DNA from: Octopus bimaculoides
Lineage: Eukaryota
Length of the DNA: 64,000 nucleotides
NCBI RefSeq assembly: GCF_001194135.2
Contig: NC_069000.1
Coordinates: 18,438,573-18,502,572, forward strand
Reading direction: 5' to 3'
Part shown: positions 16,101 through 58,890 of the stretch, in pieces
Layout of the letters: each line of letters opens with the position of its first letter
How positions within the stretch are numbered: the stretch's first letter is position 1
The notes under the pieces: model-generated
The model's input: the letters and a program-made list of their open reading frames with translations, nothing else
What the model was told of the DNA's origin: nothing
Database searches by the model: none
Program-made: the position numbers and the translations under genes

Positions 16101-19087
16101 GGTAGAATGATGACAATGTAAGATTTGCTGTGATATTGCTGATTTATAATAGCAGATTCTAAAGACAAATTATCTGATGTCGCAAAGAGGCTAGGATAAG
16201 ACAAGGAAATCAATTGTGAAAAAAACCAGGTCATTGTGACAGGAGAACAACACAGAACAATGGTACCAGCATGGATGCAGTTAAAATCAATGACATTCAG
16301 TCAGAATCAGTGGATGCATTCATGCAAAATCAAGATAAAGACACAAACTGCAATAGCAACAACAGAATTAGCAAAGGAAATGAGCAATATTTGAGCAGTA
16401 AGAACATTGCAATGAGTGACAAACTAAGACTAATGCAATCTATGATGACTGCATTTGTATTGTATGGATGTGAGATATGGACGTACATAAAAACATTGAG
16501 ATGGAATTATCAGCATTCAAAACGAGATGTTTTTACAGAATTCTTGGCATTACATGGTAGGGTTGCTGGTACAACCAGTCAAACTTGGAACAATTTGATG
16601 TGATGGTTAGGGAGAGAAAACTAATAGAAACTGCAAAACGGAAAACACTGTAGTGGTTCTCTCACATCAGTAGGATGACAGGATCGTCTGCAGAAATAAG
16701 CATGTTTGGTAAAAATGGAAGGTAAACAGTGAAGGCAACCAAGAAGAGGCTTGTTCGATGATTTTGAGATATGAATTATGATGAAATCCTCAGAGATATG
16801 AAGAAAGGAGTGGAAAACATTGCTACAAAATTCAAGTTTTTCAATAGTAAAAGTGCTTTGGGAACAACCTGTGTGTAATAAAGACTCTAACAAAAATTGT
16901 ACGCTTATCAAACAACTATTGGAAAGAACAGAGAAACTAATTTAATTAAAATCAGTAGACAATAATTAAATGCTTTGCGGTATTTAGTTTCTTCTTTTTT
17001 TTTACGTTCTAAGTTAACTTGGGTCAACTTTGCCTAAGTACGTTTCCGGGTTCAATAAATTATGGGCAACATTAAAATGTGTGATTTTGTATCCAAATAA
17101 TAAAGTGGAAAATATCACTACCATTACAAAAATCAAAATACAAGGTCAAGGTAATCTTTACTTAAAGCGGCGTCAATTAACAGGAAACTAACAACATCGG
17201 AGAATGTACAAAATTTATTAGGCTTTTGTACAAATTTACTTATTATTGATTAAATGAAACGGACAACAAATCGCATCTTTTCGAAATTCATCTTGACTAA
17301 GTCACTACAATATAGTGCAAATGTATTTATTTAAATTTTATAACTCCATTCATAATTTTCTCTTACAAATAAATAACAGAATTTTTGTTTACTTTTCAGT
17401 AATGCTAGCTTCACAAATTAAATAATAAATAATAAACAACCGATTTTAAGAGTTTACGTATTCGTTTCAGTCATCTAGAGTAGCGAAATTTTTTTTATAC
17501 ATTCTTCATCATTACTGGGCTTCTTTAATTGACGCCGCTTTAATTAAAGATTTCTTGTTGAAGAAAGTAACCTTTTAAATCGACTGAGTATCTTACTGGT
17601 ATCTATTTTACAGAGACATCAGGAAAGAAATAAAGTATACAAAATAGACTATCTAAAGAGCAGCTTCCGCATCCTTGGGATGGATGTGAGGACTTTTCAC
17701 AAATCCCGTAAGGTTGCTGCGAACACTCTTCCAAAATGTATTGCTGTTCCCATGCTTTATCTAAAAATCTTTTGTCAAACACCTGCCACTTTCATCTACA
17801 TAAGGATAGACGAGTCAACGGGGAGCCTGTATCACCGCTCGACCTTCTAGAAACAGCATCCCTTAATCACATCTTACTCTCTGGAAAAAGAAAAGAAAAT
17901 GAAGGGCATGTAATTAGAGATACACTTTAAGAATATAAGAGACGGGATGGCTAAGGAGGGGAAATCTTTTTATCAGAGATGTGACCTGGAGTCTGATATA
18001 CAACGACATCTTAAGGGTACCTTGGAGCCAATGAGGGAACCTTTTAGCGGTCATTCCACCTGCTAGAAATACCTGCTAAATATACACCAAATCAAATTCT
18101 ACTGTTTTAAAAAAAGGAAAAGAAACGTAATATAGTCTTAGAGATCCTAAAAAGGCAAGAAGGCCACGGCTGGAATTCCCTTAATCAGGGATCATCTACG
18201 ACTAAGACAATAACATTAGGGTATCCTTATAGTTTTTTAAGTGAACATAAATTTCTATTTTCGTTTTTGCGGTGGTTCACAGGCGAACTCAGGGAGTAGA
18301 ACAAAACCTTAACTGTTATTGATAACTATTAATAAACAAAACAAAAAGATAAAACATGGAAACACTGAAGAAAAATAAACTGCAAATTATATTTGTATTT
18401 ATATCGAGACTTATAAAATGTGTACAGAGTTCCTTGTGCAAGGAAATACCTGCTGAAATAGTGTTTATTTGAATTTAAATTATTCGAAAAATTAAACGGG
18501 AACCTGTCGTTAACAGTCGGAAATAATTCAAACGGAGGACAATTTGAAATGGATCACCGTTATTCGCAAGAATCGAAACAAGTTTTATTTGTTGTTTTTC
18601 CTAATTTTTCGGTTATTTTTTAAAATTTAAATTCATAGTTTTTCTTTAACGTATATTTGTTTTATTTCATCTGTTTATGTCACAGAAACAAACAAGTTAT
18701 GACCTATTTCTATGAATGAGTGTGTATACGTGTGTGTGTGTCTGTGTGTATATATAAATATATATGTGTGTGTATACATATACATATGTGTGTGTATATA
18801 TATATATATATATATATCTTACTCATACACTACAAACATAGACAGCCTCGCACATTTTCATATAGATCGACACACAAAATCATTAAACATAATGCATCAG
18901 TGTACGCACTCATAAACACACACATATGTGTATATGCGTGTTACATATATATAAATTGTTAACTCACCACTTTCAAATCAAGTACTCCATCTTTGGCTTC
19001 CTGTAATAAAGATACGAATTTGGTGGTGAGAAGTCCAAGACTCTTCTCGTGTCGACTGGGTGTGGTGTGATCGGTTGCAGCCATCAT
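1081..19087 (-). CDS. E2F4/5: E2F4/5-family transcription factor, copy A (5' part; exons 1-2 only, continues beyond position 1)
   Basis: Exon 1 19087-18968 and exon 2 1190-1081 join in phase 0 across a 17.8-kb GT-AG intron to give [76 protein letters not shown]. Confidence 0.93.
1380..1745 (+). mobile_element. SINE-like repeat, (GAT)n-tailed family
   Basis: Contains aaaagcaccca...aggaagggcatccagcc...ccaacccatgcca; related copies at about 9690-9880, 21660-21770, 23150-23735, 35710-35945, 36650-36830, 40512-40592, 46550-46745, 49985-50230 and 51990-52130. Confidence 0.75.
3296..3430. repeat. Short foldback element
   Basis: ttcattagcttacagctgtt...aacagctgtaagctaatgaa inverted arms of about 50 bp. 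Confidence 0.75.
3627..4017. repeat. Near-perfect 391-bp palindrome (188-bp arms, 15-nt loop)
   Basis: 3627-3814 is the reverse complement of 3830-4017 with few mismatches; loop gcagctgttacttga. Confidence 0.95.
5771..5821 (-). promoter_or_regulatory. E2F + ETS motif pair inside intron 1 of copy A
   Basis: TTTTGGCGCGC (minus, 5811-5821) next to palindromic TTCCGGAA (5800-5807) in a locally CpG-rich, repeat-free stretch. Confidence 0.4.
6140..6345 (-). mobile_element. (TA)n-flanked Penelope-type repeat with minimal hammerhead-like motif
   Basis: Minus strand TCTTT-CTGTTGA-A-GAGCgtaGCTC-GAAACGT-T-AAAGA. A related copy in the opposite orientation at about 9380-9480 shares gaagagc..gctcgaaacgt and cccgagcgtc. 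Confidence 0.5.
6358..6695 (-). mobile_element. tRNA-derived SINE
   Basis: Minus-strand head with A-box-like tggctcagtag and B-box-like gagttcgattcc. Confidence 0.7.
7639..8700 (-). mobile_element. Decayed Tc1/mariner transposon (frameshifted transposase)
   Basis: ORFs 8676-8296 (HTH region, LGKWVP), 8284-8075 (RLVTCEK, decayed xVTGDEKW) and 8069-7830 ([21 protein letters not shown]); terminal repeat caggtcatcctataagtaatg at about 7641. 5' boundary uncertain. Confidence 0.92.
8805..9205. mobile_element. Tigger/pogo-like MITE (degenerate)
   Basis: Right end cgcgatagtcgagggattact with a partially matching left end ctcctcagtatatcgcg. Confidence 0.45.
10975..11251. mobile_element. hAT (Charlie-like) MITE, 277 bp
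   Basis: TIRs CAGGGGTTTTTCAAACT / AGTTTGAAAACCCCTG; perfect 8-bp TSD GTTTAGCT (10967-10974, 11252-11259). Confidence 0.92.
12291..12515 (+). mobile_element. SINE 3' half (5' part in gap)
   Basis: Near-identical to 13050-13270. Confidence 0.85.
12879..13270 (+). mobile_element. Full-length tRNA-derived SINE (octopus OK-like)
   Basis: gcaggagtggctgtgtggtaag...(TA/TG)n...aaatgactgaaacaagtaaaaga. Other copies: about 20100-20450(-), 23020-23150(-), 24635-24750(+), 26845-27160(+), 34330-34706(-), 37785-38228(-), 42150-42300(-), 43930-44095(-), 50800-51099(-). Confidence 0.88.
14601..14992 (-). mobile_element. tRNA-derived SINE (octopus OR-like), young copy
   Basis: Head TGGCCCAGTGG (A box) and GGTTTCGATTCC (B box), (CAA)n tail; a related older copy at about 48370-48655(+). 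Confidence 0.85.
15760..16930 (+). mobile_element. Second decayed RTE-like LINE fragment
   Basis: Remnants of FVDF..FDK, VRQ(G/S)C, RFA(D)DI and a C-terminal GR-K-W-DD-like segment; heavily disrupted. Confidence 0.7.
17147..17557. mobile_element. Inverted-repeat-bounded element (MITE, family undetermined)
   Basis: ttaaagcggcgtcaattaa / ttaattgacgccgctttaa plus about 15 bp of further imperfect IR; no clear TSD. Confidence 0.65.
18968..19087 (-). CDS. E2F4/5: E2F4/5 copy A coding exon 1
   Basis: 40 codons; [30 protein letters not shown] is identical to the recalled vertebrate E2F4 segment; donor GTG|gtgagt. Confidence 0.95.

Positions 19088-58890: not shown

Follow-up and report, generated by a model that had tools for sequence, protein, structure and literature searches.

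Vertebrate E2F4 and E2F5 are p107/p130-binding repressor E2Fs of the DREAM complex, whose DNA-binding arm is E2F4/5, and the single repressor E2Fs of invertebrates are presumed to repress in a DREAM-type manner, partnered by DP and a pocket protein. The vertebrate pair are paralogues that go back to a single ancestral E2F4/5 gene (Cao et al. 2010, PMC3224931), and in the invertebrates sampled E2F4/5 is slowly evolving and single-copy, with one member each (PMC3224931). Here we describe an E2F4/5 pair in a 64,000-nt stretch of the Octopus bimaculoides genome (the window; GCA_001194135.2, CM046620.1, where window position w equals record position 18438572 + w). Two E2F4/5-class genes lie there in tandem, both on the minus strand, with copy B (XP_014780553.1) upstream of copy A (XP_014780551.1) and 39.8 kb between their start codons, in line with a preliminary description made from the letters of the window, which had placed two same-strand genes about 40 kb apart. 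Our overall account, which we hold with considerable confidence, is that an octopod tandem duplication produced the pair, that both copies have been kept as repressor E2Fs, and that exon 2 has undergone gene conversion between them. The origin of E2F4 and E2F5 was independent, in early vertebrates, and the two lie on separate chromosomes; the octopod genes form a local tandem, approximately 12-19 kb apart and sister to a single Sepia gene, and neither copy is the orthologue of E2F4 or of E2F5 specifically.

Both octopod proteins contain full-length E2F_TDP and E2F_CC-MB domains. The DNA-binding domain (Pfam PF02319, E2F_TDP; cut-off 25.7 bits) scores 91.9 bits in copy B and 93.8 bits in copy A, and the dimerisation domain, the coiled coil and marked box (PF16421, E2F_CC-MB; cut-off 33.9 bits), scores 93.8 and 109.2 bits, respectively. 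The Pfam DNA-binding domain begins at residue 14 in both copies, with no long N-terminal extension of the E2F1-3 type, which in those proteins holds the cyclin A-binding/NLS region, and the RRIYD recognition helix is encoded in exon 2 of each. Among solved structures, the DNA-binding domain matches the E2F4 chain of 1CF7 (E = 6e-37), and the E2F_CC-MB domain matches E2F4 in 5TUU (1e-31) and E2F5 in 5TUV (7e-31), as against only 6e-4 for E2F1 in 2AZE. A C-terminal motif aligned with the pocket-protein-binding motif of other metazoan E2F4/5 proteins is retained in both copies (binding predicted). All top protein-search matches of the pair are E2F4/5 proteins, and the cephalopod clade nests among mollusc E2F4/5 in our tree. 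Judged by domains, structure matches and tree, copies A and B belong to the repressor E2F4/5 subfamily, the same subfamily as vertebrate E2F4 and E2F5 by domains and structure matches (1CF7, 5TUU, 5TUV). They are alike in domain architecture to Drosophila E2f2, C. elegans EFL-1 and the E2F4/5 proteins of Haliotis, Lottia, Crassostrea and Liolophura, with very high identity in the DNA-binding domain. Both genes are public in RefSeq, GenBank and UniProt, nominally as E2F5 or E2F5-like, and the RefSeq name E2F5 is nominal for both, with no orthology to vertebrate E2F5 implied. A search of one literature library found no description of an octopod E2F4/5 duplication or of the conversion tract described below. 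The two genes make a well-behaved example of a lineage-specific tandem pair of paralogues with a local conversion tract.

The pair is separately annotated in four octopods: O. bimaculoides, O. sinensis (copy B XP_029647495.1, copy A XP_029647496.1), O. vulgaris (copy B CAI9737685.1, copy A CAI9737686.1) and Argonauta hians (copy B GAB1601981.1, copy A GAB1601980.1). The earlier concern that annotation could merge or chimerise the two genes is therefore not borne out in these species. The B-A order on one strand, with nine exons in each gene, is found in O. bimaculoides, O. vulgaris and Argonauta. Copy B lies 18.7 kb upstream of copy A on the same strand in O. vulgaris, and the Argonauta order is B, A and then a KIF1B-like kinesin gene on the opposite strand. 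Copy A of O. bimaculoides is followed by the same KIF1B-like kinesin, with copy B upstream of A within the window, and in O. sinensis A and B are on one chromosome record with consecutive accession numbers. In the cuttlefish Sepia (Acanthosepion) pharaonis, a single E2F4_5 locus with two isoforms is followed by the same kinesin. We chained the exons of seven genes (copy B in O. bimaculoides, O. vulgaris, O. sinensis and Argonauta; copy A in O. vulgaris and Argonauta; the Sepia gene), and all seven have nine coding exons and an exon 2 of 110 nt. A 120-nt coding sequence (CDS) in exon 1 is common to all of them, the Sepia exon being 153 nt as annotated. Every other mollusc among the protein-search matches listed appears with a single E2F4/5 gene, which, together with the published survey (PMC3224931), agrees with the premise of the preliminary description that invertebrates generally have one.

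To place the duplication, we aligned the proteins of six octopod sequences, two Sepia sequences and twelve other lophotrochozoans, and analyzed the alignment twice, once without exon 2, with our own code for neighbor-joining (NJ) and maximum-likelihood (ML) trees. Bootstrap support in the NJ trees was 100% for A, 100% for B, 100% for the cephalopods and 97% for A and B as sisters, the last with or without exon 2. Under ML (Poisson+F+gamma, three fixed placements of Sepia), the best arrangement was (A,B),Sepia, ahead of (A,Sepia),B by 12.3 log-likelihood units and of (B,Sepia),A by 10.1, with a RELL (resampling of estimated log-likelihoods) value of 0.91. The grouping of A with B in the trees and the single locus in Sepia together favor a duplication on the octopod lineage that predates the divergence of Octopus and Argonauta and most likely followed the split from decapods. 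The lineage-specific duplication proposed earlier is thereby supported, and the two genes are not an ancient pair found throughout molluscs.

Several points tell against this timing. The ML lead of A+B (10-12 log-likelihood units) is just 1.3-1.9 standard errors, (B,Sepia),A retains a RELL value of 0.09, and two sites back B+Sepia as against five that back A+B, all of them conservative changes. A and B are both long branches, and long-branch attraction or early gene conversion in other exons could inflate their grouping. The decapods are represented by Sepia only, the one decapod genus available, with Nautilus, squids, Vampyroteuthis and cirrate octopods outside the sampling. These points would fit an older duplication, at the base of the coleoids or earlier, in which one copy was lost in Sepia or the decapods and A+B is an artefact of long branches or early gene conversion. 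We consider such an older origin unlikely: NJ support for A+B is undiminished when exon 2 is removed, zero sites back A+Sepia, the Sepia annotation holds one locus that adjoins the same kinesin as octopod copy A, and Sepia keeps the consensus residue where A or B each departed from it.

An artefactual or decaying copy is a much poorer alternative to an octopod duplication with two functional products. On this view one of the copies would stem from misassembly, would be a haplotig, or would be a duplicate that is incomplete or in decay, with A an orphan two-exon fragment or B an unexpressed pseudogene. The O. bimaculoides assembly is gap-rich, and the window holds only exons 1 and 2 of copy A. 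Window positions 1-29087 are 100% identical to L001, the O. bimaculoides locus around the annotated XP_014780551.1, and L001 contains matches for all nine copy A exons, with exons 3-9 past window position 1 at L001 31135-43903. The worry that copy A might be an orphan fragment is thus laid to rest, all of its downstream exons lying just outside the window. A 214-N gap (L001 37190-37403) cuts exon 5, leaving the RefSeq copy A protein at 311 aa, 37 residues short of the 348 aa in O. vulgaris, and the same gap is why the annotated protein gave no clean GT-AG chain; exon 3 is partly duplicated, at L001 31133-31342 and 31517-31675, on either side of a 10-N gap (L001 31507-31516). Copy A is a complete gene whose damage in O. 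bimaculoides comes from the assembly, not from biology.

Also on the side of decay, the protein collection yielded no transcript fragments of A or B: a query with the first 195 aa of copy B found no transcript-derived fragment of it, and a 77-aa query from exons 1-2 of copy A found short fragments of other animals only, none from a cephalopod. The case for copy B expression comes from annotation and purifying selection, and this too weakens our account. Against decay, both genes are intact with nine exons each in the gap-free O. vulgaris and Argonauta assemblies, and copy B is intact in gap-free O. sinensis, where copy A is annotated. The A and B exons 1 are 73% identical, far past allelic divergence. 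The ratio of nonsynonymous to synonymous substitution rates (dN/dS) is close to 0.05 in each copy, measured across a divergence with saturated dS, and from such purifying selection we argue that copy B is expressed and functional. No copy contains a frameshift or stop. We therefore reject a haplotig or assembly duplicate, an orphan-fragment A and a pseudogene B, given intact genes in gap-free assemblies and dN/dS near 0.05, and regard the whole class of explanation as having very little chance of being right.

The exons of the two copies differ greatly in their histories. Exon 1 follows ordinary orthology, with 13-15 differences per 120 nt between A orthologues, 16 between B orthologues and 28-35 between A and B. 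In exon 2, A and B differ within a species at 2/110 positions in O. bimaculoides, both synonymous, at 5/110 in O. vulgaris and at 0/110 in Argonauta, as against 10-15/110 between Octopus and Argonauta orthologues. At synonymous sites the two copies differ by 0.04-0.24 in exon 2, and each of the remaining exons gives a value of 0.55-1.0. The preliminary description was right that exon 2 is nearly identical in the two genes and missed gene conversion as the cause.

The near-identity extends beyond the exon as a discrete tract. In O. bimaculoides it covers 159 nt on the copy A side, where exon 2 is flanked by approximately 43 nt of intron upstream and 6 nt downstream, and is 95% identical to its copy B counterpart; the O. 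vulgaris tract measures 160 nt (95%) and that of Argonauta 158 nt (99.4%). Its limits in each species run from about 40 nt upstream of exon 2 to 6-9 nt downstream. The intron part of the tract is near-identical between A and B within a species and unalignable between Octopus and Argonauta. As this species-specific intron identity is inexplicable by selection on the protein, we attribute the near-identity of exon 2 to recurrent interlocus gene conversion in each lineage; it is gene conversion, and it occurred independently in the Octopus and Argonauta lineages. Dispersed repeats aside, a block of about 160 bp is the only nucleotide similarity between the first introns of A and B; the preliminary description had likewise seen shared sequence only next to exon 2. 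Outside this island the introns share no sequence in which conversion could start or extend, and such homology dependence would be the simplest account of why the tract has similar limits in both lineages. It is unlikely that the A and B exons 2 are mere assembly copies of one another, as four independent assemblies agree and 2-5 bases differ in Octopus.

Extreme purifying selection on the exon 2 sequence itself (protein, perhaps RNA) is the least credible of the alternatives: the peptide is nearly invariant across Metazoa and varies among cephalopods at just one position, T/Q (AADQL in Sepia and several other molluscs), and orthologues diverge somewhat less at synonymous sites in exons 1-2 than in other exons, but synonymous sites do diverge, at the 10-15/110 seen between orthologues as against 0-5 between paralogues within a species, and the identity reaches some 40 nt into an intron sequence that is species-specific yet common to both paralogues, which rules out selection alone and leaves this explanation a negligible likelihood.

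Localized conversion of tandem paralogues has textbook cases in the human gamma-globin genes HBG1/HBG2 and the red/green opsin genes. The octopod tract resembles them in that paralogues are closer than orthologues and that a discrete tract including non-coding sequence is flanked by sequence of normal orthology. It differs in being very short (about 160 bp, a single exon) and in keeping nearly the same limits in lineages with saturated dS that share no other alignable intron. The island is a clean instance of concerted evolution confined to one exon, and exon 2 is unusable for telling A from B in short-read expression, editing or phylogenetic work.

Outside exon 2, both copies are strongly constrained. 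Between O. vulgaris and Argonauta, dN is 0.083 and dN/dS 0.047 for copy B (0.047-0.053 across Octopus-Argonauta comparisons), and dN is 0.097 and dN/dS 0.049 for copy A, with dS saturated at approximately 1.8-2.0; on this scale copy A is not the slower of the two. The stems give a different picture: in the NJ tree without exon 2 the copy B stem measures 0.219 and the copy A stem 0.126, with 17 and 9 fixed unique changes, respectively. Tajima tests count 43-44 unique changes in copy B and 27-34 in copy A (p 0.04-0.3 by species and outgroup). The excess of B over A sits on the stem branches and is a weak effect. The suggestion that copy B is the faster-evolving gene is supported only in part: since the Octopus-Argonauta split, the rate of change in copy A has at least equalled that in copy B.

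A consensus test against 208 non-cephalopod metazoan E2F4/5 proteins (90 columns at least 95% conserved) further qualifies the contrast between a canonical and a divergent copy. Copy A departs from the consensus at 5-6/90 columns (E161R, V162I, loss of P163, L183M, V199L), copy B at 5/90 (A31T, K39R, T149I, E162G, L190M) and Sepia at 1/90. Single-gene invertebrate lineages appear with one E2F4/5 each (PMC3224931); octopods have two, and both have left the metazoan consensus equally, in different domains, as the cuttlefish gene did not. The contrast holds in exon 1 only. There, copy A matches the human E2F4 chain of PDB 1CF7 at every residue from S11 to K39 and then has V where human has L, which bears out the match to vertebrate E2F4 given in the preliminary description. 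The substitutions it listed in copy B (TSK, QDTED, DLRV) are real, and relative to the segment shared by human E2F4 and copy A they read T22S, E30D, A31T, K32E and K39R. Since Xenopus E2F4 and crustacean E2F4/5 proteins also have TSKF and EAEDG, those exon 1 positions are not strictly invariant. We also observed lower synonymous divergence between Octopus and Argonauta orthologues in exons 1-2 (0.44-0.57) than in exons 3-6 and 9 (0.65-0.96), which hints at some silent-site constraint near the 5′ end of both genes.

The sequence of events that would best explain these data begins with a head-to-tail tandem duplication of a single ancestral coleoid E2F4/5 gene in the lineage to incirrate octopods, the duplicated unit probably being the whole nine-exon gene with a proximal 5′ motif. 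Both copies would have been retained as functional repressor-class E2Fs. After duplication, copy B fixed changes in the helix-1 region of the DNA-binding domain, the coiled coil and the pocket-binding motif, and copy A in the marked-box loop, where it carries a short deletion, with strong purifying selection on both copies thereafter. The island of about 160 bp (exon 2 and its 3′ splice-site region) has been repeatedly homogenized by non-reciprocal recombination, and the two proteins have an identical recognition helix because of conversion in exon 2.

Both proteins should pair with DP and bind the E2F site through their common RRIYD helix, and both should recruit a p107/p130-type pocket protein by the C-terminal motif and repress in a DREAM-type complex. 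A further caution is that DP binding, pocket-protein binding and DREAM membership are read from sequence only. The complementary fixed changes, together with the constraint, fit partitioning or specialization of function rather than decay. It is conceivable, although we would not expect it, that the copies are non-redundant and have split ancestral roles (for example, cell-cycle exit and a differentiation program) through their DP-facing and pocket-facing changes, with conversion of exon 2 keeping both proteins reading the same promoter sites. If roles have been split, the locus would be a natural experiment in the partitioning of a DREAM-type repressor in a large-brained invertebrate, and the pair offers a second case besides vertebrate E2F4/E2F5 for the division of repressor E2F functions. 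Current understanding is not overturned, and the interest of the case is modest.

Coordinates of the E2F4/5 pair and other features in the window (positions are those of the window; strand relative to it)
Feature	Position	Strand	Remarks
Copy B exon 1	58771..58890	-	ATGATG start at 58890; 120 nt CDS, ends in phase 0, donor GTAAGT; exact exon chain
Copy B exon 2	42333..42442	-	110 nt, ends in phase 2; contains RRIYD recognition helix
Copy B exon 3	40255..40412	-	coiled-coil part of CC-MB domain
Copy B exon 4	38824..38939	-	marked box
Copy B exon 5	36260..36484	-	end of marked box and start of linker
Copy B exon 6	35221..35314	-	linker, SP/TP-rich, including RSSPRK
Copy B exon 7	34173..34259	-	exact exon chain of XP_014780553.1
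Copy B exon 8	32931..32975	-	exact exon chain of XP_014780553.1
Copy B exon 9	31569..31720	-	includes stop codon; C-terminal pocket-protein-binding motif
Copy A exon 1	18968..19087	-	ATGATG start at 19087; 120 nt CDS, ends in phase 0, donor GTGAGT; N-terminus of XP_014780551.1
Copy A exon 2	1081..1190	-	110 nt, ends in phase 2; RRIYD present
Conversion tract, copy A side	1075..1233	-	159 nt; exon 2 with intron on both sides (about 43 nt upstream, 6 nt downstream)
Conversion tract, copy B side	42327..42483	-	95% identical to 1075-1233
Spacer, copy B stop codon to copy A start codon	19088..31568	.	12.5 kb; copy A promoter region, repeats
15-nt motif TACCCAGTGTGCTGT	19125..19139	-	38-52 nt upstream of copy A ATG
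15-nt motif TACCCAGCGTACTGT	58937..58951	-	47-61 nt upstream of copy B ATG
N gap	41349-41737		copy B intron 2
N gap	44949-45319		copy B intron 1
N gap	51100-51333		copy B intron 1
N gap	6810-7330		copy A intron 1
N gap	9483-9492		copy A intron 1
N gap	11635-12290		copy A intron 1
Dispersed repeat copies	12297-12515, 12873-13272, 20086-20440, 26838-27098, 34321-34713, 37773-38228, 50786-51099		

The annotated copy B protein (XP_014780553.1, 368 aa) maps exactly onto nine GT-AG exons of the window (58890-31569), so that all of its coding exons lie inside; exon 1 encodes the N-terminal arm and the helix 1 region of the winged-helix DNA-binding domain. The tandem ATGATG starts and the identical lengths and phases of exons 1 and 2 in the two genes are as first described, and so are the long first introns (given earlier as 17.8 and 16.3 kb), which measure 17,777 nt in copy A and 16,328 nt in copy B with estimated N runs counted. 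All N gaps of the window are intronic and leave the exons untouched. The window and the N-free O. vulgaris assembly (loci L003 and L004) form one collinear, same-strand alignment chain with matches flanking every gap. Because of this collinearity and the exact mapping of the copy B protein, exon order and reading frame are unaffected by the gaps, and intron lengths alone are approximate, the N runs being estimated. No long open reading frame was found in the 12.5-kb spacer between the genes, and no other long open reading frame or gene was found in the window.

An intronless version of copy A exons 2-9 is present after an N gap at positions 1509-2266 of the unplaced 2,266-bp scaffold LGKD02062228.1 (L008), approximately 99.6% identical to the chromosomal exons and annotated as XP_052834238.1 (partial). 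Either this is a retrocopy of very recent origin or the assembly was contaminated with cDNA. The 37 residues absent from the chromosomal model are present in it, and our full-length copy A protein is a composite of XP_014780551.1 and the product of this scaffold; users of the O. bimaculoides RefSeq copy A model should be aware of the shortfall.

A 15-nt motif, TACCCAGYGTRCTGT, lies 38-61 nt 5′ of both start codons (0 chance matches expected). It is also upstream of both O. vulgaris copies, Argonauta copy A and the Sepia gene, and is displaced by approximately 200 nt in Argonauta copy B. We take it to resemble the ZNF143/Staf binding-site consensus. As the annotated N-terminal extension in Sepia (MQCEPTV...) begins inside the motif, the true Sepia start is probably the MMA methionine. 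Approximately 375 bp upstream of the copy A start codon we observed a degenerate telomere-like repeat, (CCCTAA) x ~11, at 19463-19530. The surrounding segment of about 270 bp (19380-19648) is without an O. vulgaris counterpart, pointing to an insertion specific to O. bimaculoides in the copy A promoter region.

Copies of a dispersed repeat family, approximately 300-400 bp long, are found in either orientation in the introns and spacer, with 65-92% identity. Copies abut gaps at 12290/12291 and 51099/51100, so these gaps are probably repeat-induced; other gaps have TA-rich microsatellites at their flanks. The segment 51004-51679, which includes a 234-N gap, spans about 0.7 kb as against about 2.0 kb for its counterpart in O. 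vulgaris, and either the gap at 51100-51333 may be under-sized or O. vulgaris may carry an insertion. The inter-gene spacer also contains a tandem array of six 66-bp units at 23162-23560, with 74% matches.

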